Part shown: piece by piece, positions 1 to 24,487 of the stretch
Layout: every line of letters starts with the position of its first letter
Numbering within the stretch: position 1 is the stretch's first letter
Assembly (NCBI GenBank): GCA_033442325.1
Contig: JAWQFM010000003.1
Span: 1,456,473 to 1,520,472, forward strand
Direction: 5' to 3'
From: Salpingoeca rosetta
Lineage: Eukaryota > Protista > Choanoflagellata
Length of the DNA stretch: 64,000 bases
Translations under genes and position numbers: made by a program
The notes under the pieces: generated by a model
Seen by the model: the letters and a program-made list of their open reading frames with translations, nothing else
The model's database searches: none
What the model was told of the DNA's origin: nothing

Positions 1-6188
<6,188 letters not shown>

Positions 6189-7226: not shown

Positions 7227-9157
7227 TCAGCTTGAAGGGAAGAGCGAATCGAATCGCTTCTGGTCCATAATGAGACGCATGATAAACCCATGCTGCGTGT
7301 CGTGTCTAAACCACCAGTCCCGCGTGCGCGTCTGCTTGTTCAGCGCAATCGTCAGGTCACGCACAAGCATCGACTCAATCTCAAGGAAGAATTTGCACGT
7401 CTCCGACTCCTCGATGATGGACAGCAGATCCTCAAAGTCCTGCACAAACGGCGTGTAGGGCTCAGGGAAGCCAAAGTCCGACCCTGTTGTTGTTGTTGTT
7501 GTTGTTGTGCGTATGCGTTCGTGTTTTACGTAAGGAAAAGGGCAAGGGCGCGTGTGAGACGCAGCACAGAGATGAAGAACGTGCTGTGCCTCGCCTTGGC
7601 TTGCGGGCACAGGCATGGACATGCACACACACACTCACACATACTCGCGCATACTCGCACGTGCACGCATGCGCATACACACAAACACAGACGTGCACAT
7701 GCACGCAAAGCGACAACGCACGCGTCTCGAAGGAGCGGCTGATGGTGAGGACGATGCGTTCTGGCGACGCCTTGATGCGGTCAATCACCTCCTGGTGCGA
7801 CAGGCTGCCCACGTCCTCGTTGTTGATCTTGAGAATCTGGTCACCAACACGGAGGTCCGCGTGGAGCGCAGCGCTGTTTGGCAGTACCTTCCCCACCATG
7901 GGCGGTACGGACGAGCCATATCCGCCAACGACCGTGAACCCAAAGCTGCCGCTCAGCCGCTGGAACGTCACAATCTCCACGCGACTGGCGACGGCGATAC
8001 ACTTTGGTGTGTGGCGCAGCGCACGCTGGTACTCCTGCACGAGTTGCATGCGCTGTCGTTGGATGGACGTGAGGGCGGCCTTCCTCTCTGTCAGCGTCTG
8101 CGACTCCTGCTGTAGGATGCTCTCGTACGGCTCAAGCGCCAGCTTCGATCCAATGCTCTCAAGGTGCGTCACGTGCGCCAGGTATGCCTTGGACCGCTGG
8201 TTCAGCAGCTGAATGTGCACCGCCGCTTTTGTCAGGTCTGGATAGAGGCGCATCAGATCGTCTCTCGAGTCTGCGAGGGCCGCCTGCTCGTAGCTGTCAC
8301 GCACGTGGCCGTACCGCGCCAGGGCCAGCCGTCGGTGCTGGTCATACACCTGTATAGCGCATGCAAACACGTGGTGAGTTGCATGCGCGCGCTTTGTATG
8401 GTTGTACTTGTGTGTTTGTGTGTCTGTGTGTTTGTGTGCTTGTGTGGGTGTTTGTGTGTGTGTGCTTGCTTGTATGTGTAGACGTGTTTGTATGTGTTTG
8501 TGCGCAGAGCGCTGGAGGGGGGTCGATGGTGGAATCACGAACACGTTCGCGTGCACTTGTGCACCAGTTTTGGCGTACAATGAGGTCGTCGCGAAGGGTG
8601 CGAGTTGTCACGGAGATGAGGTGCCTCAGGTCTGCAACTGAACGCGAGTATGAACACATGCACGTTGCCCCGATGAGTCCTGTGTGAACAGACAGGGTAC
8701 ACGCAGTCACAACCACCCGAGCACACGCACGTATACACATGTACACGTGTACACAAGCATACACACGCAGATACTACACGTACATGGGACACACGCACAA
8801 TGAATTCACCCCGATACCTTCGTAACTCTGCTGCTCAATCTTCGCTTCGAGGTCGCGCTCCAGGACCAGGCGCACGTGGTCTGGGAACTGGCGAACAAGC
8901 TCAACAACCTCCGTGTGGTCGCAGTTGGACACGTCCCGCCCATTCACTTTCACTGCACGGTTCATGATGGGGGGGGGGGGGCAAAGTGCGATTTGAGGTG
9001 GGCGGCAGGGGTGTTACTTGTGAGGGTGAGGAGGCCAAGGGCGGTGGTGGATGAGTTGGAGGAACTGCACTTAAGTGTCGAGCAAGTCGGTGAACAGACG
9101 CAGGAGAGACCGTGCAGCACGGCACACACACACACACACAAAAAAAAAAGAGTACTC

Positions 9158-9679: not shown

Positions 9680-11338
9680 GCGCGCGCGCCTACGCACCGT
9701 CTTCGACGTCCATGGTGCGCTCGATGGAGAAGAGGACGAGCTCGCCTCGCGGGACGCGGCTGAGGAGATCCACCAACATCTCGTGGGTCAGGTGCTTCGT
9801 ATCAACGCCGTTGACCGCCAGCAGGTGGTCCCCCGGCTGCAGCTTGCCGTACGCCGGGCTTGTCTTGAACACGGTGTGGATGAGCATCTTCTCTGGGTAC
9901 ATGCCGGCAACCGTGAACCCAAAGCCACCCTCAACAGGGCGCTTCACCTCGTGTGTCAGGTGCACGTGCTTCTCCTTCCGACTTGTCACAGAAGGACTGC
10001 GTGCAGGCAAGCGCGCAGACCGAAGCGACGCGGACTTGCGTGGGGACGGGCTCTTCGACCCGAGCGAGCGGCTGCGCGAATTGCTCCCGCGCGGGTCAAT
10101 GTATGTCGTGCGCTTGTTCAAATGACTGGGGGTTGGTTGTTTCGGTATGTGTGTGTGTGTGTGTGTGTGCGGGGAGGGGGAGGCAGAGTCACGGCGCGTG
10201 GAGGAGCGAGCGGTGGCTTGTGAGCGAGCGGTGGCGTGTGAGCGAGTGTTTGCTCGACCTACACGCAAGCAAGGATCCTAACCACCTGCACATACACCCA
10301 CGCACTTCACATGCAATCACAAAAGCCCGTGCCAGCAAGGCGGTCAACATACTCAATGTAGTAGGTGCCATGTTCCCTGTCGCGCACCACATCCCACCCG
10401 AACGGCAGGTCTGTTTCGCGGTTGTGACGTACACACGCACAGGCGATCACGTGAGTGTGGCAAGTTGACAGCAGACAGGGCAATCAACAGGGTTAGCAAA
10501 GACGAGATAAGCGCCTACCACTTTCGCTCTGACTGGCTAATCGTTCGATGCGCGGGTCTATCATGTGTGTCATCTGCGTATCTCGACTACACGGCAAAGA
10601 ACGGGGAAGGTGTGTGCGTGTGTGTTGGGGGGGGGGGCGGGAGGAAGAGATAGAGTTGTTGAGTGTAGGCGACGAAAGGGGCACACGCATGCGCACGCAA
10701 GCACACTCATGCACGCGCACGCAAGCACACTCATGAACGCGCACGCGCACACTCATGCACTCTCGCTCACCCATACACACCTGCACTCACACACACACAC
10801 CTGCACACACACACACACATACATACGCTTGCATACTCGCATACCCGCCCCTTCATACACGCACGCACTGCCGTCGAGCTTACTTGAAGAAGCATTCTTC
10901 ACCGGAGGATGTGTATCGTATCTCCCAGCCGGGAGGAAGAGGTCCCAGGTCGCGGTCACGCGAGACCTCTCGCTCAAGATCCCATTGCTCAAGATCCGAG
11001 CGCTGCTGTGCAATCTGGCTGATGCCCTTCTCGAGCTGCTCTGGTGCAAGCCCGCCGACGACGGCGCCGTCCTGACTGTCGTCCAGGTCTTGTTCGTCAG
11101 GGTGGTACACGCCGGAGCTGAGGGATCGGCTGCGCTTTCGACCCAGGCTGCGCAGGCTGCTGAGGCTGCGCGACAGGTTCTTTCGCAACCTGCCCAAGGA
11201 CGAGGATCTTGCGCGCGTGGTGCTCTCCTCTCTGTCCTCTGTCCTCCCACGCCTCGTCTTTGTGCTTTTGCTTCGGAGGCGGTTCCACAACCTCGAGAGC
11301 GAGTTACCCCGCTTCATGCTGCTGTCTTTCCTCGGCAT
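7227..11338 (-). CDS. MAGI-like scaffold: two WW domains, three PDZ domains and a coiled coil, no guanylate kinase domain seen
   Basis: WW1 LGPLPPGWEIRYTSSGEECFFN|RDTQMTHMIDPR; WW2 DLPFGWDVVRDREHGTYYI..HLNKRTTYIDPR; PDZ signatures GGFGFTVAG..LQPGDHLLAVNG, GTYGFAIT..RIGDKI..VNG and GSFGFTVVGG..LRVGDQILKIN. Stop at 7227. An additional 5' exon upstream of 11338 is possible. Confidence 0.85.
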
Positions 11339-12093: not shown

Positions 12094-14228
12094 ATGACAA
12101 CACCAAAGTTGTTTCGTGCCATCGCAGACTTTTCGTCTGACGATGCAGAGGATCTCCAGTTCCGGGCTGGTGCCACCATCATTGTCACAGATCAAGGCGA
12201 AGGCAAAGAGTCCTGGTGGTAGGTACACTACAAATGCGTGCGTGTGTGCGTACACGTGCGTGTGCATGTGTGTGTGTGCGCACACGTGCGTGTGCATGTG
12301 TGTGTGTGTTCGTGTGTGTTCGTGCGTGTGCATGTGCGTGTGCACATGCATGTGTATATGTGTGCGTGGCGGAACATGCTACGTCCATGCGATTTGCGTG
12401 ACTTGCGTGACTTGCGTGACTGGCGTGACTGGTGTATTGTGCTTATCGCTGACCCATCCCACCACGCACACACAACACACACATGTTTCTTTTATCCCCT
12501 CCCCATCCTTCTAGGGAGGGTGAGCTCGATGGCAAGAAAGGCACCTTCCCCGGCACGTTTGTTGAGCCGCTGTCCAAGTTTGTGAGGCAAATGGGTGCCC
12601 AGGTAAGCATCAACCACTGGCTGCGCTGCAATGCGTCGCGCAGGAGAGCACACAGTCACAGTCACACACACACACATACACGTGTTCACAGAGGTATACA
12701 CGCACAATCACACACGTGTACACGCACACGCACACGTGTACACGCACACGCACACGCGTAAACACACACGCACACGCGTAAACACACACACACGTGTCCA
12801 TGTGCTCACATGATGATTTTCCATGTCTGTGCCTTGCTGAATGCAGGCGTTCAGTGTTGCAGACAAGGACAAGGAAGAGGAGGAGGAGGACGAGGAAGAA
12901 GAGGAAGAACAAGCAGAACAAGGAGAGAAACAGTCACAGCAAATCAGGCAGTTGCAAGCGAGCAGTCCAACCACTGGCCGCGCAGCCCCGCATGGTGCCG
13001 CTAAGCGTGTCAGGTTTGATCTTGGCTCCTCCACAATGTCGGAGACATATGGCAAGTTTGAATACGACCGTAGTGGCGAGTTCAACCCCGACAGATCACA
13101 CCAGGAATGGCTGCTGGAAGAGGTGCGTCGCAGGGAATGCGTTGCAGCCGACACACAGACAGTGCCACGTGCGCGTACATGACTTGTTCCCACCTGTGTT
13201 TTTTTTTTTTTTTTTGAGCTGGACACGACACGACCATGCTTGCCCATGCCTCCAGCCGTCCACTCATCATCATCATCATTATCGCGTGTTCGCTCCCCAA
13301 TAGGCGGAAGAGAAGCTGCGCATGCTGCGCGACCGCTGGTCATATCTCGAGTCAAAGCTCCCGCGCGGACAGAAGTGCGAGGAACGCATCGCCTATGAAA
13401 GGTCAGTGCACATCTCACACATACATGCTTGCGTGCGCGCGCATGAGCAGGAATGTCAAAGGTGGGCAGAAACGAGACGGTTGCGGCAGTGTGGGTGCGC
13501 CCATGACATACGCTTGCCTTGCTCACACGTGCCTGTTAACGTTGATGGTGAACGTCAGGGAGCAAGAGGAGAAAGAGAGAATACAGAGGGCGGAGGAAGA
13601 GCGGAAGCGACAGCGGCGCCTACAGATGAAGTTGAAGCTGCAACAGGTACACATTCTGCTTGCGACCATGCACGGAGCGCGTATGCTTGCTCGTGCTTGT
13701 GGGCGCACGTGTGCATGTTTATTTGTGGGCGCACGTGCTTTTAAGCGTATGTGTGTGCGTGTGTGCGTGTGTGCGTGTGTGTGCGTGTGCGTGCGATCTG
13801 CCCACGTCGAGTCGAAAGGGCAGCGTGCTCGATGTCAACAGTACTCATGGNNNNNNNNNNNNNNNNNNNNNNNNNNNNNNNNNNNNNNNNNNNNNNNNNN
13901 NNNNNNNNNNNNNNNNNNNNNNNNNNNNNNNNNNNNNNNNNNNNNNNNNNCGCGCAGTGAGCGCTTGCGACGGCTGCAAGAGGCGCGTGCAGCACGCCGC
14001 TCTGGGGAGCAAGGCCAACACGCGGGACTGCCAGGTGCACAGGAGCGAGGGGGCGCTGTTGCTGCAGCACCACAACAGCAGCAGCAGCAGCAGCAACGTG
14101 CTCGCGTGATGTTCCTGCAAGGTGCAGCGAACGACAGGTGTGTGGCTTTGAGTCTTGAAGGAGGAGAGAAGATGTGCTGGCGCGAAAAAGTGATGGTTGA
14201 CACTTCTCCGTGCTCAACAACAAACTTC

Positions 14229-14437: not shown

Positions 14438-14579
14438 CATATCCAGGGCGCCGCCACCATCGCAGCCCGTGCTGTCACTTGAGCCGACGGACGAGGACGT
14501 GGAGACGGACGATCTGACTGCGACGACGCTCACATTCCACCGCGGGGTATGGTCGCAAGGGCCGCAGACAGAGGCGTGA
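12094..14579 (+). CDS. SH3 domain + neurabin/spinophilin-type PP1-binding module + coiled coil (possibly the 5' part of the downstream PTP gene)
   Basis: MTTPKLFRAIADFSSDDAEDLQFRAGATIIVTDQGEGKESWW|EGELDGKKGTFPGTFVEPL is an SH3 domain. It is followed by an acidic tract, KRVRFDLGSSTMSETYGKFEYDRSGEFNPDRSHQEWLLEE and a charged coiled coil. An N-gap interrupts the gene. TGA at 14577-14579 if unspliced. Confidence 0.8.
13851..13950. other. Assembly gap (100 N)
   Basis: Run of N. Confidence 1.
14229..14323 (+). repeat. (TCTG)n tetranucleotide microsatellite, intronic
   Basis: Directly visible tandem repeat. Confidence 0.95.
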
Positions 14580-15854: not shown

Positions 15855-15856
<2 letters not shown>

Positions 15857-16216
15857 CACGGGTTCTGGGCAAGAGAAGGAGGAGGACACGACAGCGCCGG
15901 CTGCAGATGATGCGGGGACACGGGGCGACAGCATCGATGATGACGCAGCGGCTGACACAGCACCAGTCACGCCCGCTGTGAACGGCAGTAACGCGAGCAC
16001 AGCGGCCACGCCTGCCAGCGACACCACGACCGCGACCAACAGCAGCAACACTGATACAGGCGATGGTCGAACGCCGCTCGATGTCGCAATTGATCGACTC
16101 GAGGAGACAATAGCGCAGCTGGCGCGGGAGGACGAGGGCGGCGTGACGGGATTCGCCCGCGAATTCCTCGTGCTCGACCAGCAGGACCACGAGTGAGTGC
16201 GCACACACTGGTGTAT

Positions 16217-16306
<90 letters not shown>

Positions 16307-19300
16307 GATGTGTGTGTGTGGATGTGTGGATGTGTGTGTGTGTGGGGGGGGGGGGAGATGACATGACGAATGTTGTTTTTGTTGAAAAGAGACAAGTGTT
16401 GATTCGTTGTGGCGTATCCTGTGGCGGTGGCTGACCGCTGACGTTTGCCAAAAGTTACGGGCGTTGGATGTGTGTGTGTGTACGTGATTGTGTCAGTGTA
16501 TGCATGCGGCTGTCCTCTTTCATCATGGTATTGACCACGCCCACCACCACTGGCAGAATGTTCCGGCGCCGCAAGACGGAGGCCGGGGAGAAGCGTCGCG
16601 AGCTCAACCGCTACTCGGACATCATTCCATATGATGCAACGCGAGTCATGCTTGGGCCCCAGGACTCATCAGAAAATTACATCAACGCAAGCCACATGCG
16701 GGTACGCAAGGAAGCACGCGTTGTGTGTGCATGTGTGTGCATGTGTGTGCATGTGTGTGCATGTGTGTGCATGTGTGTTGCACCTCTTCCTTTTGCTGTT
16801 TCTCACGCATGTCAACCCAACATCACCTGCATGCCCTCCTCCCTCCCTTCTTACACGCCATCAGAACCTGCTGCCCGGGTCACCGCACTATATCGCTGCG
16901 CAGGGCCCGCTCGAGGGCACCGTCGCACACTTCTGGAAGATGATCGCACAGGTGTGCGCGTGCGTGTGTGTGTGTGTTTTGTGTGTGCGCGCGTGTGTGT
17001 TCGCTGTCGTTGTAACAGTGCCTTTTTTTGACCTGTTGTTCGTGCGGTGTGAGCACATGCCTTTGTAAGCTTCTGCGCGTGGTGCCTGCCTGCTCACGGT
17101 ACTTCCGCCGTTGCTTTTGCCGCTGCAGGAAAAGACGCGTGTGATCATCATGGTGACGAACACAGAGGAGAAGGGGCGACGCAAGTGCGAAAAGTACTGG
17201 CCAGGTGCGTTTTTCCAAGGAGTGTTTTCCTTTTTGCTTGTTTGTGTGCGCGCGTGTGCGTGTGCGCGCGCGCGTTTGCACGTTGCACGCCCACACATGC
17301 ACACGTACAAACGCATGTTACACATGAGCATGCAGCGTTCAGGCTTTGTGTATGTACGCGTGTTTGCTTGTGGGGGCTTGCCTTGCCGTTGAAACAGCAC
17401 CAGATTCACGTCAACTCTCACCTGCTGTGTGGGCATTTCGTCATCAGATCCCGGCCACGTCCTCTCATTCGAGGGCTCGGTCCACGGCCCCGCTGTTCAA
17501 GTGCTCTGCAAGTCCGAAACGCGCGCACAGGCCTGGTGAGCTGCAGTTGTCGTGCACGAGCTCTGCAGTGTGCGTTGGGTTGCGACGAACACACGACAAC
17601 ACAGGAGAACACATCATCAGTGACTGCTTTGCTTGCCATTGTTGTCCTGTTCCTTCTATTCCTTCCATGTAATGCCCACAGCACTCACGCCACCGTCACA
17701 ACACGATCACCACCACCACCACCAACAAATAGGGTGCGTCGCGAGTTTCAAGTGACGCAGGTGCAAGACGGAGAACGGGTGGAGCTGAACGTGTCGCAGC
17801 TGCACTTCACGAGCTGGCCCGACCGCGGTGTACCGCACGACCCCGTCATGTTCCTCAGCTTCCTGCACACGGCCATGGCTGCGCAGAACGCCGCGCACAA
17901 GCAAGCGCTCAGCATGAAGGAGGAGAGCATGCCACCAATAGTCGTGCACTGCAGCGCTGGTGTTGGTCGCACGGGCGTGTTCATCCTCGTCTACTCCATC
18001 CTCACCTACCTCCCATATGTGAACAAGGGCGGGCGGTATGTGCTCAATGTGCGGGAGACAATCCAGCGCATGCGAAAATACAGGCGCTACCTTGTGCAGA
18101 CAGTCGACCAGGTGAGCAACAGAGCGAGCTAACAGGGCCAAACAAGCACGGTCTGTTATAGTGCTAGTGTTGTTGTTTTGTTCGTGTTGTTGCTGCTAGT
18201 GCCGTTGCTTGTTCGCGTGGCTCTGCGTACGCTCCATGCATGTTCACTGTGCTCAATTCTTGTTTCAACTTGATCATTATTATTGCTCTGCCTTGCTTCA
18301 CCTCACCCTCCAACACCACAACGTTCCTGCTGTGTTGCAGTATGTGTTTTGCCACCACACCATCCTGCATGCGACCAAGTTCTATCGTGACGGCAGCAAG
18401 CGTCTCAAGCAGCAGAAGCGAACAACAACAACAACAACCACCGCCGCCGCCGCCACTGCGTCGCCCGCCACAACTGCAGCAGCAGCAGCTGTTGTTTCGT
18501 CCTCGTTGGAGGGCCGTCCCGTCTCTGTTGACGATGGTGCGCCCACACCCCCGTCGTCATCATCGACACCAGCAACAACGCCTGGTGGACACCGCAGATC
18601 ACCGGTCGACGTCTCCGTGGACGCAACGCCCGAAGAAGAACAGGACCAGGAACAGCAACGACAGCAGCAGCAGCAGCGTGCATCGGTTGCGCCGTGGCAC
18701 CACCCTGAGCTGGATCGTCCTCAAGCGGAGGCCGCGATCATGGCCGTTGAGAGCCGCAGTGATGGCCTGTTTCTGTTGTACGGGCACGCCTGTGTTGACG
18801 CAACCAGTAGCGAAGACGCGCGCGTGTCACTCGCCGTGCTTGCAGGCAACGATGTGCATCACATTGAAATCACCCAACACGACAGCGGCTTTGCGCTTGG
18901 CCCGTACGTTGGATAGTGTGTGTGTGTGTGTGAGGTGTGCATGAGAATGTGTGAGCGTGTGTGTGAGCGTGTGTATGTGTCTGCGTGTGTGAGCGTGTGT
19001 GTGTCTGCGTGTGCGAATGTGTGAGTGCGTGTGGAGGTCTCGTTGTGGAAGCATGTTTATGTCTTGTTTGGCGTGTTCAGTCTTGCAACCCAAACTGCAG
19101 CAAGCACCGCTCACGTTGCAGTCCGTGATCCATTGCCATGGCAGGCACACCGCCGAGGACCTTGCATCGTTGGTGCTGCAGCTTGCGCGGGCGGGTATGT
19201 CAGTGCACGTGCCCGCTGCGCTGTCGTTCTTCGTTCCGCACGCGTCCGCCGCACAGGAGGCCGTCATCATTGAGCTGCAGCGGCTGGAGGAGGCGGCCCA

Positions 19301-21183
19301 ACAGCATCAGCAACGACAGCAGCAGCAGCAACAGCAACAGGAGGAGCAACAACGGCAGCACCAAGCGCGGGTCGCGGCGGAGACGAGTTTTTCTCACGTT
19401 GCGCCACCTGTGGGCACACCGGAGCGCGGTGGTTCACGCACGAGCATCACGTCTGCGTCAACCGACGTGTCCATGGAAGGGGATGGTACGCCACGCAAGT
19501 CATCGCTTCGCTCTCGAATGAAAAACTTCAAGAAGAAGCTCACGCCGCGCAAGGTAGCAGCACGGCAGCCATGCAGCTTGCAGCTTGTTGTTGTGATTCA
19601 TGGCTGTGTGCTTATGTGTGTGTATGTCGCGCAACGTGCACGCTTGTTTCGCTCATGCATGTGTGCGTGTGTGTGCTTCATTGAGTGGTTGACACGTACC
19701 TTGTTCTTTGCTCTGTGGGCAGCACGTTGGTGTTTGTTAGGCTACATGATGAGGTAATCTGACATCCGTAACATGATGCTGTGCTATTTTGTTGTCGACT
19801 TCAGAGCAAGGAATTGCGGGAAGCGACAGAAGTGAAGCGAACGCTTCGCATTGCTCAGTTCTCCCCACCCGATCCAAAGGTACCACAAGCAGCGGGCTTT
19901 CAAAATGCCACACCGCGACCTCCTCGTGTTTGGGCGGTGGGGCGTGTTAGTGTGTGAGCACTGTGAGCGCAACCATTTTGCGGTGGTGCCATCCCCCCAT
20001 CTCCAGGCAAACAAACACGCAATACTGCTCACCAGGCTTGCAATGGAACTCACCACCAACATCACACTCCCATCTCTTGTGTGTGTGTGTATTTGTCAGG
20101 TGCTCAGCAGTTCCTTCAAGCGGGGCGGGGATGTGCTTGAACTGTCTGGCAGATCGCACTACCTCACATTCCTCAATGGTGTCTATCGCGAAGTTGAGCG
20201 CTCCCACCGCGGTAACCCCGTCTATAAGCTCATGTACGCGCAGCATGTGTTGTATGTGCGTCAAGTGTGAGTGTGTGTGTGTGTGTGTGATGCGTGTCAT
20301 GTGTGAAAATGTGTGTGTGTGCTTGTGGCTTGCAATTGGCATTTGTTTGTCATTGTGATGTTGTGCGCCAGCAACGTAACACCAACATCGCGGTGCTGAT
20401 CACGGCTTCTCTCACATCTATCCCGCGTTTTGCACCTGTCCGCTCACCCCACCCCCACATCTTTGCGTTCCGAACTCCCTCCCTCCCCCCCCCTCTCTCA
20501 AATAGGGCGCCAATTGATGCCCCACACACGCATCTGCACGGCGAGTATGTGTTTCTGTTCATGGACATTGACGACAAGGCGTGGGTGTTCTTCCTTCCAA
20601 ACGCTGGCCCGGTCGCTTGCTGCGCGGCCATCTCAGGTACGCGCAAGTGTGTGTGTGTGTGTAAGTGTGTGTGTAAGTGTGTGTGTGTGTATGTGTGTGT
20701 ATGTGTGCGTTGAGTAACGGGTGGCTATGAATGAAAGCGTGGCCGTGCTGAGTGAAGGAGAGAGAGAGAGTGTGTGTGTGTGGCTGTGTTGTAATGCTGT
20801 TCAAAGTCATGGCTTGTCGTTTTGCATTCACCCTTGCCTCTCACTCGCCATCTTCCCCTTGTTCCTCCTAATCCTACACCCCACACGTCTCCGCTTGTTT
20901 GTTCCATTCGTCAACTTGTGTGCGCAACAGCGGATCCCGTTGAGACGGACGGCGAGTGGATGATTGTCAACACGCGGAACGAGCTCGTCCCAGATGCAGC
21001 CGTGCACATCTCACGACTCGCAGGTCACCATCATGACCATGGCATTCGAGGCGGCGCTGGCAATTGCACTCTTGCTTGATAGCGATGGTAGTGATGCTGG
21101 TGGTGAACAGTGAGTTATCTGCTCTTTGCACGCTGTCCTCACGAGTATGTATTGTGTGGGATGTATGTGTATGTGCATGTGCA

Positions 21184-21262
<79 letters not shown>

Positions 21263-22143
21263 GTGCATGTGCATGTGTATGTGTATGTGTATGTGTATGT
21301 GTGCGTGTGCGTGGTGCAGGTGTGCCTGAGCGTCGCCATCCAAGCCGGGAAGCAGAGAGCGCAGAGCTCATGAGTTTGCGGGAGGAAGTACAGACGCTTC
21401 GGTGAGAGACTGAGACGAGACAAAGTGGTTCCGAACGCCATTTATCGTGTGTGCTTGTGTGCGTGTGTGTGCGTGTGCGTGTGCGTGTGGTTATGTTTGA
21501 AGAGTGCTGCAGCAAGCTTTAAGCTGCTCGTGTTTATACTTGCTTGCACACGCCCTCAACTGTGATCACACACGTCCTGCACATGTCCCACTTCCCATTT
21601 GGTTTATATGCTGTTGTGAAAAGCGTGCGGCTGAAGGAAGCATCTGAGCGCGAGCACCTCGCGACCAAACTCATCCAGTCTCAGAAGACTGTCAAAGACC
21701 AGCTCTCGCAATCTCAGGTCTGCAGTTGCAACAGCTACATTTGCTGTGTGCGCGCGTGTGTGTGGGTGTTTGTGTGTGTGTGTGTGTGTGTGGTTATGTG
21801 TGTTTGTGTATGTTCGTGTATGTGTGTGTGTGTTTGTGTACTCATCGTGCCCATCGACATCTTGTGGGCGTGTGCGCGTGTGTCTGGCAGCACCGCGAGC
21901 GAGAGCTGGCGATGCGGCTTGTGGAGTTGCAGGAGCTGGTGGCGAGCAAACTCGGCATGGATGACCTTGAGGAACTGCAGGAGGCGGCAGCGAAAGGTAC
22001 GGTGCTTGATAGTGGTGACAGTGACTACAGAGCTGTTTGGAAGCACCGGCGGTCTCACAAGCACGTTAACACACACACCCACACCCACACCCACACCCAC
22101 ACCCACCCACCCACACACACACACACACACCCACACACCCACA

Positions 22144-22201
<58 letters not shown>

Positions 22202-22440
22202 GCACGCACGCTTTGGCTGTGATTGCAGCATCTGGCACGGAGAGTGAATTGCAGCAGCAGTTGCAAGTTGCGGAGGCGAGGATTGAACAGCTCGAGAATG
22301 AACTTGCTCAGGCAGCAGAGGTAGGGTCCCTCTCCCAACCCACAGACACACAGACACACACACACATTCCCACACACACACATACACACACAGACACACG
22401 CATGCACACACGCATGAACACACACACATGCACACACGCA

Positions 22441-22471
<31 letters not shown>

Positions 22472-23442
22472 TCCCACACACACAAACACACACATTCCCA
22501 CACACACATACACACATTCACACACACATGCATCACGCTCACCTTTCGCCCTTGTTTGGTTGGCAGGTTGAGACGAGCCTGCGCGACCAGATCAACCGTC
22601 TTAGTCTAGCGGAGGAAGGCCTCTCCCGTCGCATCGAGCGCCTGGAGATGCTCCTTGACGAGAAGACAGATGCCCTGAACCAGTCCGCATCCAACGAGGA
22701 GGTGCGCTGCGCATGTACACGCGCGCGCACGTGTTATTGTTCGTTCTATTGTTGCGTTTTGTGGATTTTTTTTTGGACTGCTGTTGTTTGTTGTGTAACT
22801 TGGTGTTTCGATGTTGTTGTTCCGAGTTGTTCATGTTTCATTTTCTACATTTCCGACGCGAACGCTCACGTCCCCTCCATCATCACTTGTCTTGCTCTGC
22901 GCCGCTGCGCATCTCCCTCAGTCCCTTGCTCGCGAGCTTGCGTCTGCAAAGGTGCAGATTGCAGAGTTGATGGAAGAAACAAACGCGTTTGCGCAGCCAC
23001 CCACCGCCAGTTTCAAACAGGTTACATGTCGCGTGTTCACGTTTGCCGTGTCGTGTGTATACATATGTGTGTGTGTGCAACACGTTATGTGTCTCAACAC
23101 ACTCCTGCGTCTCGCTGGTGTTTTTGGGTTCCTGTCTTCCTCACGTGTGCGTCGTTTCTGATCTCTCCATGCTGTTGCGCCATGCGCTGCTCTGCGCCTA
23201 CAGGTGTTGGACTTGTCCAACATTGATGAGGAAGACGAAGAAGAGGAAAGCGCCGATGAAGCCACCATCAAAGCACAGCAGTGCGTTGAAGCATGTGTCA
23301 TGCGAGTCCTGAATTTTGCCACGAGACCCCAGCACACGTGCCCATTGTTAACGTTCTTGTACCAGTCACGTTGACCTTTCTCTTGTGATTCTCTGCTCAC
23401 CATGTCCCATTACACACTGCTCGTCCACACTTGCATTGTGGC

Positions 23443-23489
<47 letters not shown>

Positions 23490-23640
23490 GGTTGAGGCAG
23501 CGCGACAGAAGGCCCTCAACGCCGCCAACATCTTCGCTGACGAGAGCGGATTTGCACCGCCGCCAAAGGTGAACAAACGCACATCACCACTGAAATGTGG
23601 GAACAACGCAGACGGCGTGTGTGTGTGTGTATGTGTGTGT

Positions 23641-23673
<33 letters not shown>

Positions 23674-24196
23674 ACAGCTACGGCTGTGAAATGAAGTTAG
23701 GATTGTGGTTTGTCTGATGTTAATGCCTTGGATTCACTCGCTCAAACCCATGATGATGTTTGGCGTTGCGTCGACACAGCCATCGCAAGAGCGGCGGGGA
23801 TTGCCAGCTGGTATCTTGTGGGGGGAGGACAATGCTGATGGCGATGATGACGGTGACACTGCTGGCGCTGTTGACGACGACGACGACGATGATGATGGTG
23901 ATGGTGATGATGACGCACGCACGCGGACGCTTCACCTGGCCGGGTTTGGCGAGTCCATGCTTGGCGGCGACGAAAGTAGCATGATGGACGATGATGATGA
24001 CGACGATGAGGATGACTCGTACATTCCAATTGATGACCAAGAAGAGTACATTGCACTTCAGGATTTTCAAGCCGTTGCTTCAGATGAGCTGTCTTTCTCA
24101 CGGGTATGCGTGCATGTGCTTGTGTGCGCTTGTGTGCGTGTGTCTCTGTGTGTGTGTGTGTGTCTCTGTGTGTGTGTTTGTGTGTGTGTGTGTGTT

Positions 24197-24228
<32 letters not shown>

Positions 24229-24487
24229 CTTGTGTGTGCATGTGTACACGTGGGGCTGCTCATCAGTTGTCGCACCAGCGCATCGTTCAACCCTTCCTCA
24301 GGTTGTTGCCTCATCTCATTCAACTCAACCCCACCTCCAACATGACCACGACCGCAACCATATCACCTCCACCGTTGATCAGGGGCAAACCATCCTCGTG
24401 ACAGGCCGTCAGGGGCAGGACTTCTATGGACGACTGAACGGACGCGAGGGCCGGTTCCCCATGCGCTACGTCGGCACCAAGATGTGA
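15855..24487 (+). CDS. Non-receptor classical protein tyrosine phosphatase: PTP - SH2-like - unknown domain - coiled coil - SH3 (start codon not found)
   Basis: PTP motifs [62 protein letters not shown] and LVQTVDQ|YVF. SH2-like [27 protein letters not shown]. Heptad-rich exons at 21.3-23.0 kb. C-terminal SH3 [19 protein letters not shown]|[16 protein letters not shown] ending TKM* at 24487. Confidence 0.85.
21161..21301 (+). repeat. (ATGTGT)n hexanucleotide microsatellite, intronic
   Basis: Directly visible tandem repeat; it produces spurious MCMC/HIHI ORFs. Confidence 0.95.

Follow-up and report, generated by a model that had tools for sequence, protein, structure and literature searches.

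The window, a 64,000-nucleotide stretch of contig 3 of the choanoflagellate Salpingoeca rosetta, is intron-rich eukaryotic DNA with a GC content of about 56% and CA repeats in its introns. Our study concerns a gene on its forward strand, predicted to span positions 12094 to about 14579 (Table 1), and a segment of the third exon of this gene that an initial annotation had taken for a protein phosphatase 1 (PP1)-binding module of the neurabin/spinophilin type, lodged in a non-neurabin protein. Sequence comparison and modelling support the view that an extended PP1-docking string like that of neurabin/spinophilin is present here in a protein other than a neurabin. The gene model was read from the sequence and searches were run exon by exon rather than with the joined spliced protein; homology searches left out the CA-rich part of intron 1 (12259-12366), which was masked in the local BLAST database, and did not take as queries the loci L001 and L012, cut out around the window's own genomic match.

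The SH3 domain begins at residue 8, right at the start of the protein, and is divided between exons 1 and 2. Exon 1 matches Pfam SH3_1 with an E-value of 1.2e-6 (28.4 bits, cut-off 22.9), which bears out the SH3 attachment proposed in the initial annotation, and the best matches of the domain in the PDB are intersectin-2, CSK and GRB2. Exon 3 is free of stop codons, with an AG acceptor at its start and a GAG/GTGCGT donor at its end. Its residues 53-92, KRVRFDLGSSTMSETYGKFEYDRSGEFNPDRSHQEWLLEE, are encoded by the last 40 codons of the exon (13003-13122) and read KRVRF...EYDRSGEFNP...EWLLEE, exactly as first reported. Exons 4-6 encode a conserved, highly charged and probably helical region, which is what had been called a coiled coil; helices are also present in the model of the orthologue P0004 (see below). 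A Pfam search of exons 3-5 returned only low-complexity noise.

The 3' part of the gene is less straightforward. Exons 5 and 6 flank an assembly gap, and as they form one continuous exon (KLKLQQRRKQREQEP...SRSERLRRLQEARS) in a marine-metagenome relative, coding sequence may be missing at 13851-13950. The split codon AG/G links exon 6 to exon 7 (14447) in frame, and exon 7 resembles the C-terminal tails of the orthologues P0004 and P0006. A second RVxF-like motif, RARVMF, lies near the end of exon 6 (14097-14114, forward strand); its place is taken by GRLVF in the metagenome relative L007 and perhaps by DIRII in P0004. By its sequence, it could be a second docking site, for PP1 or for another partner.

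Table 1. Positions of the exons and putative docking elements of the SH3-string gene, and of the neurabin-like gene of the same genome
Feature	Position	Strand	Content or basis
Exon 1	12094..12218	+	ATG and N-terminal half of SH3, MTTPKLFRAIADF...GKESW, then split Trp codon
Exon 1 donor	3' of 12218	+	TG/GTAGGT
Exon 2	12515..12602	+	C-terminal half of SH3, EGELDGKKGTFPGTFVEPL...; Pfam SH3_2 positions 37-54 of 55
Exon 3	12847..13122	+	276 nucleotides, 92 codons, both ends in phase 0; linker bearing the acidic tract, predicted PP1-docking string, helix start
Acidic tract	12865..12927	+	KDKEEEEEDEEEEEEQAEQGE, within exon 3
RVxF motif KRVRF	13003..13017	+	predicted ligand of the PP1 RVxF pocket (sequence and model)
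ΦΦ-position strand T-M-S, then E-T-Y	13033..13050	+	alignment A3 and model contacts
Arg motif with Tyr, Y-D-R	13063..13071	+	Tyr and Arg invariant in 8/8 strings (A3)
F-N-P turn, then helix start DRSHQEWLLEE	13081..13122	+	F-N-P a possible counterpart of the Trp motif
Exon 4	13304..13401	+	AEEKLRMLRDRWSYLESKLPRGQKCEERIAYE, helix continued
Exon 5	13559..13648	+	charged helix, (R)EQEEKERIQRAEEERKRQRRLQMKLKLQQ
Assembly gap	13851-13950		100 N, between exons 5 and 6
Exon 6	13953..14137	+	RSERLRRLQEARA...RARVMFLQGAAND; 5' end uncertain owing to the gap
Exon 7	14447..14579	+	APPPSQPVLSLEPTDEDVETDD...TFHRG; ends at the stop 14577-14579 or is spliced at the donor 14546
Neurabin-like gene	L003 = G000:C17:329000-338999	-	L003 numbering: string ~8380-8482, PDZ ~7990-8160, SAM halves 5858-5953 and 5289-5405

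The string and its conservation in a family of SH3 proteins

A string of motifs known as RVxF-ΦΦ-R-W is common to Phactr1-4, neurabin/spinophilin, PNUTS and PPP1R15A/B (Fedoryshchak et al., 2020, PMC7599070; eLife 2025, PMC12185105, from the same laboratory). In this class, the RVxF motif fills its pocket on PP1, the ΦΦ residues contribute a strand to PP1 β14, the Arg is joined to PP1 D71 by a salt bridge and makes a bond to N271, a Tyr two places ahead of the Arg stabilises it and touches D71, Y70 and P24, and a Trp or other hydrophobic residue lies on PP1 I133/Y134; in neurabin, a five-turn helix follows the string and leads to the PDZ domain (PMC7599070; PMC12185105).

A profile built from two strings (A1), that of the window and that of the genome's own neurabin-like gene described below, was searched against 1.84 billion proteins and gave four real matches; the hit P0003 was rejected as a spurious repeat protein. 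Animal neurabin was not found among these 1.84 billion proteins, which was to be expected, since about 14 bits are far under what 1.8 billion sequences require. P0001 and P0002 stem from contigs of Tara and further marine metagenomes (L007-L010), which have the exon layout of the window gene and an identity to it of 84% in exon 1, 69% in exon 2 and 75% in exon 4; their string is GRVSFDLVGGGLFDTFATSEYDRSGEFNPDKSHQEWILEE, the exon 6 part RSERLRRLQEAR is 92% identical in them, and GRLVFLRGNAQSR occupies the same place in L007 as in exon 6. The nucleotide similarity of L007 to the window begins 3 bases upstream of the ATG, and the nucleotide alignment with this metagenome relative consists of exon pieces only, which in exon 3 means only the string part (13060-13127).

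P0004 (297 residues, from a transcript-like Logan contig of 1.1 kb) has an SH3 domain, then RIRITSGHTVGETYSRHEYERAGDFDPERSANDW, then ETLRMLRDRWQYMERDLPPGAKCAERLAWER, and is 68% identical to exon 4 of the window gene. P0006 (428 residues), a complete open reading frame (ORF) in EukProt, was found by a word search with P0004; it starts with MGNC, followed by the SH3 domain, KGIRF, 15 residues, YERAGHFDPARSQDQW and a helix as in P0004, and its counterpart of exon 4 is QRMLEFRWYILERDLPPGSKCDEH. Both proteins have SH3, string and a helix of the LRML..RW kind. On an unrelated Logan contig, P0005 (170 residues, L011 416-928) contains KRVSFDLEHTAVQETYGSQEYDRS, which shares 60% identity with the initial half of the window string; no SH3 domain is visible in this 170-residue ORF and the continuation after the string differs. 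Pfam reported SH3 only in P0004 and P0006, with no PDZ, SAM or ankyrin repeats, and an ESM Atlas look-up of P0006 returned only generic SH3 clusters with low scores. Members of the SH3 family have so far turned up in one choanoflagellate, in one marine-metagenome relative and in two transcriptomes of protist type.

The conservation anticipated for orthologues is seen in P0002, P0004 and P0006, all of which have kept the string, and the string and helix are therefore the conserved core of this small SH3 protein family. The claim that the protein bears no PDZ domain has also held, Pfam reporting none in exons 3-5, nor in the orthologues P0004 and P0006, which are full-length. The acidic tract, which had been likened to that of neurabins, is indeed present ahead of the string, but its conservation is not: it is absent from P0002, P0004 and P0006 and fails to align with the metagenome relative. 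From these comparisons the tract is lineage-specific and probably no more than a linker.

The N-termini of the family differ. P0006 starts MGNCLSG and P0004 has MGCTSS at a possible start (residues 30-36), sequences that look like signals for N-myristoylation/palmitoylation; the window protein and the metagenome relative start M(T/A)TPKLF, without an acylation-type signal. The C-terminus of P0004, -SQV, looks like a PDZ-binding end.

Within the string, the elements were compared in an alignment of eight sequences covering both SH3-family and neurabin-type strings (A3). The RVxF position reads GRVSF in P0002, KGIRF in P0006, KRVSF in P0005 and SRIRI in P0004, the aromatic residue being kept in seven of the eight aligned strings. 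At the ΦΦ pair, the window has M-S and the metagenome relative L-F; V-L stands there in the genome's neurabin-like gene, and spinophilin has V-F. The Thr of E/S-T-Y is invariant in all eight. Among the four sequences with proven SH3 context, which also served as our strictest profile (A4), G-x-F-x-P, R-S and W are invariant. Candidates for the Trp motif are the Phe of E-F-N-P, itself invariant in the SH3 family, and the Trp of Q-E-W.

Likeness to neurabin and spinophilin

The window string and that of neurabin/spinophilin (PPP1R9A/B; structures 3EGG, 3EGH, 3HVQ and 9GSU) have in common an RVxF motif, exactly 15 residues, and Y-D-R; S/E-T-Y precedes the Arg motif in both, and Y-D-R is followed by x-x-x-[hydrophobic]-[DN]-P and then a helix. 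Identity over the 40 residues is only about 30%, neurabin has V-F where the window has M-S as its ΦΦ pair, and the G-x-F-x-P-x-R-S..W block of the SH3 family is not found in neurabin. The spinophilin string that the initial annotation had quoted proved exact, with a 100% match to residues 34-73 of chain C of 3EGG/3EGH (neurabin-1, as in 3HVQ and 9GSU, differs at a few positions), and its near-register alignment to the window string with one 1-residue gap was reproduced, with a BLOSUM62 local score of 44 that was reached by 0.02% of 20,000 shuffles (p ~2e-4). The score of the window string against the genome's neurabin-like string was reached by none of 20,000 shuffles.

Two profiles were used to search 177,635 PDB sequences. 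With five family strings, leaving out the genome's neurabin-like gene (A2), four distinct PP1-binding chains of neurabin/spinophilin ranked 1-4, in register, with E-values of 0.06-0.26. With A4, the same four chains ranked 1-4 with E-values of 0.12-0.45, the alignment running from the RVxF motif as far as the E-L-E in the helix. At E<=10, neither search reported a Phactr, PNUTS or PPP1R15 chain.

The S. rosetta genome itself was searched in six frames (55.4 Mb, 68 contigs). The single window string gave one non-self match, RARRPSFDIAATQVLETYSQSEYTRGKFAFNP on contig 17, with an E-value of 0.085; A2 found only the window string itself and this neurabin-like string (E 8.8e-4), as did A4 (E 0.012). 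A random match would have had about 1e8 alternative six-frame positions in this genome. The string RARRPSFDIAATQVLETYSQSEYTRGKFAFNP opens a large exon and lies directly before a PDZ domain, followed by a long coiled coil and a SAM domain. This PDZ domain has a Pfam E-value of 4.7e-8 and its best single-domain PDB match is spinophilin (36.9 bits), and the SAM domain, split over two exons, matches SAM_1 with an E-value of 9.5e-6. By its sequence, this string-PDZ-coiled-coil-SAM gene is of neurabin-1 architecture, with the string at the neurabin position. It shares F-D, E-T-Y, E-Y-x-R and F-N-P with the window string. Its RVxF position reads R-R-P-S-F, with a Pro where V/I is needed; a separate KRRGVKF lies further downstream in the gene. 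A word search using L003's neurabin-like exon (region 1-175) found nothing at E<=0.001, and our literature search found no mention of neurabin together with choanoflagellates.

The two genes of this genome differ in what surrounds the string. The neurabin-like gene runs on into PDZ, coiled coil and SAM, and its string begins at an exon boundary; the window gene has no PDZ and its string ends at an exon boundary. In the window protein, no PDZ domain was found after the helix, and an SH3 domain stands in front, not an actin-binding region; no SAM domain was found in P0004 or P0006. The SH3 protein is thus not a neurabin, as it has no PDZ domain, no actin-binding N-terminus and, judging by its orthologues, no SAM domain.

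It is possible, though we hold it only tentatively, that the string binds PP1 but arose independently of neurabin, by convergence on the same path over the PP1 surface. The string is short and disordered, 40 residues moulded by a single PP1 surface can converge, nearly all of the shared residues (F, T-Y, Y-x-R, x-P) are at or beside PP1 contacts, and four unrelated animal families of PP1-interacting proteins already have such a string (PMC12185105). The flanking domains unlike those of neurabin and the different intron positions around the two strings also fit an independent origin. This explanation has to contend with a likeness to neurabin that exceeds that to the other families, namely the F-to-Y spacing of 15, S/E-T-Y, D/N-P and the same start of the helix, with the fact that the sole non-self match in 55 Mb is a neurabin-like string, and with the failure of Phactr, PNUTS and PPP1R15 chains to appear in the PDB searches at E<=10. 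The initial annotation had suggested that the module was shuffled; the symmetric phase 0 of exon 3 would permit shuffling, but the intron positions differ, so that the exon structure provides no evidence either way.

Phactr1-4, PNUTS and PPP1R15A/B use a docking string of the class proposed for the window protein, and a helix that approaches the hydrophobic groove comes after it (PMC12185105; PMC7599070). The window string has no Trp six residues after the Arg, unlike the strings of the Phactr/PNUTS/PPP1R15 class. The Tyr-x-Arg device is common to the window string and Phactr1, where Y534/R536 act on PP1 D71/N271. The RVxF and Arg motifs are about 11 residues apart in Phactr1 and 15 in the window.

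Predicted complex with PP1 and proposed mode of action

The genome encodes a very conserved PP1 (L004), but because this gene is spread over at least four exons, we modelled the complex with P0016, a 333-residue PP1 orthologue of another organism obtained in a word search seeded with the open frame around a PP1 exon. Its numbering, set by the GDIHGQYYD motif, is that of human PP1alpha plus 2. The modelling with PP1 that had been suggested along with the initial annotation came out in favour of a complex: P0016(1-305) with the 47 residues encoded at 12982-13122 gave ipSAE values of 0.92, 0.93 and 0.92, the best of 3 controls scoring 0.00. Of 78 solved complexes, 51 reach the mark used for this score, as do 2 of 108 mismatched pairs. 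The runs have at least 83% of their contacts in common, with a partner pLDDT of 67-68.

Peptide residues 7-34 of 47 (AKRVRF...EF) are in the confident interface, the Phe of E-F being the last. In the model, the V and F of the RVxF motif contact P0016 170-171, 244-245, 263 and 291-294, corresponding to I169, L243, R261 and L289-F293 of PP1alpha; peptide residues 18-20 (T-M-S) lie on P0016 295-298, the edge of β14, and the Thr contacts P0016 73 (D71). The interface also includes P0016 26-27, 72-73 and 271-277, among them the equivalents of P24, Y70, D71 and N271. The model agrees in this respect with the published contacts of the Arg motif (PMC7599070) and with the string class (PMC12185105). 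In a single-sequence AlphaFold model of P0004, which was poor (mean pLDDT 48) and was used for helix positions only, the string is unstructured and long helices occupy residues 174-203 and 206-252, from the residue after D-P-E onwards. This helix start is at the point equivalent to that of the window protein, and the model is consistent with a disordered docking string that gives way to a helix.

Several observations weigh against a neurabin-type mode of PP1 binding. Single-sequence phmmer searches of the PDB with the 92-residue exon and with a 43-residue string retrieved no spinophilin or neurabin at E<=10, so the likeness is visible only with profiles, and none of the E-values against animal neurabin or spinophilin is significant by convention, the best being 0.06. 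The ΦΦ position of the window, T-M-S, has one hydrophobic residue only, and the RVxF motif of P0004 carries I in place of F/W. In the model, the Trp-motif site I133/Y134 (P0016 135-136) is outside the confident contacts, with 137 and 140-141 inside. The complex score may reflect memory of solved structures of PP1 with spinophilin and with neurabin, lacks calibration for peptides that are disordered, and was obtained with PP1 of another organism; owing to this possible memory, we take the model as support for a like binding mode and not as proof of binding.

Another explanation is that only the RVxF motif works, or that PP1 is not bound at all, the Y-[DE]-R-[SA]-G-x-F-[DN]-P-x-R-S...W block packing against or capping the helix, or binding another partner, and the neurabin likeness being fortuitous. 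It would account for E-values against animal neurabins of merely 0.06-0.45, for a conserved G-x-F-x-P-x-R-S...W block (A4) with no equivalent in spinophilin, and for the missing RVxF aromatic in P0004. We consider it improbable all the same, given that three independent tests each brought to the top a target named beforehand (the ranking in the PDB, the genomic match beside a PDZ domain and the complex model), that the Tyr and Arg are invariant in both families, and that the model contacts reach residue 34 of 47, far past the RVxF motif.

The best explanation of these data, to which we would give a probability of about three in four on the strength of sequence comparison and modelling, is that the gene at 12094-~14579 encodes a PP1-targeting subunit with an SH3 domain, a linker, a neurabin-like string and a helix. 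A disordered linker would join the N-terminal SH3 domain to an extended string of the RVxF-ΦΦ-R(-W) class, closest to neurabin/spinophilin in spacing and residues. The V and F of KRVRF would be predicted to plug the RVxF pocket of PP1, the residues after KRVRF to add a short strand to β14, and the Tyr-x-Arg pair to bind D71, N271, Y70 and P24 at the C-terminal groove, with the long charged helix leaving PP1 near the hydrophobic groove. The SH3 domain may bring proline-rich substrates or partners to the bound PP1, taking the recruiting role that the PDZ domain has in neurabin; alternatively, or in addition, it may hold PP1 by its PxxPxK/R tail.

ASPP1/2/iASPP and the fungal Tea4/Bud14 are PP1 regulators that combine an SH3 domain with an RVxF motif, and the SH3 domain of ASPP, which lies beside ankyrin repeats, binds the PxxPxR tail of PP1. 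The tail of the PP1 orthologue P0016 carries RPNTPPK. We know of no ASPP or Tea4 protein with an extended string of the neurabin type. Kinship of the window SH3 domain to that of Tea4/Bud14 or ASPP was considered and found unsupported, its PDB matches being intersectin-2, CSK and GRB2, and not ASPP.

Targeting subunits give PP1 its specificity, and four animal families are known so far to carry the RVxF-ΦΦ-R-W string. The SH3 family would add to these a string with a different recruiting domain, SH3 and not PDZ. From the sequence and model evidence, the SH3 protein is most likely a previously undescribed phosphatase-targeting subunit older than animals. The suggestion of the initial annotation that the module predates animals agrees with our data, since both the SH3 family and a neurabin-like string-PDZ-coiled-coil-SAM gene are present in a choanoflagellate genome. 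Animals and neurons would then be younger than both the architecture of neurabin and its docking string, and the window string provides a simple peptide for asking how old the extended grip on PP1 is and whether it spread by descent or by convergence.

A possible link to the downstream tyrosine phosphatase gene, and the upstream neighbour

Downstream of the SH3-string gene, the forward strand at 15855-24484 holds tyrosine phosphatase (PTP) exons (including 16606-16635 and 17944-17976), after which come an SH2-like exon from 18695-18733, coiled-coil exons and a C-terminal SH3 domain (24047-24472). SH3, string and helix could be the N-terminus of this PTP-SH2-...-SH3 gene, in one polypeptide reaching to about 24484, although we regard this as rather unlikely. 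The best donor after exon 7 (14546, GGG/GTATGG) is in frame with the acceptor at 15855 of the first recognisable PTP exon, this exon is without a Met, and there is no obvious gene in between on the same strand. An in-frame pairing has, on the other hand, a one-in-three chance of arising anyway, an in-frame stop (14577-14579) lies 10 codons past the donor, and P0004 (297 residues) and P0006 (428 residues) are complete small proteins whose ends lie shortly beyond their counterpart of exon 7. If 14546 were spliced to 15855, the product would be a PTP able to bring in PP1 by its neurabin-type string, forming a holoenzyme that acts as both a Tyr and a Ser/Thr phosphatase. It would have arisen when a PTP was fused to an SH3 PP1-targeting subunit that was older, stood by itself and is predicted to be N-acylated in other lineages; we judge this fuller scenario to be more doubtful still. 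Such a fusion, if true, would raise the interest of the SH3-string gene.

On the reverse strand upstream of the SH3-string gene, the neighbour at 9690-11338 is a MAGI-type scaffold gene, in which ORF 9690-10268 holds a PDZ domain and ORF 10880-11338 a WW-like motif, LPPGWEIRYTSSGEECFF.

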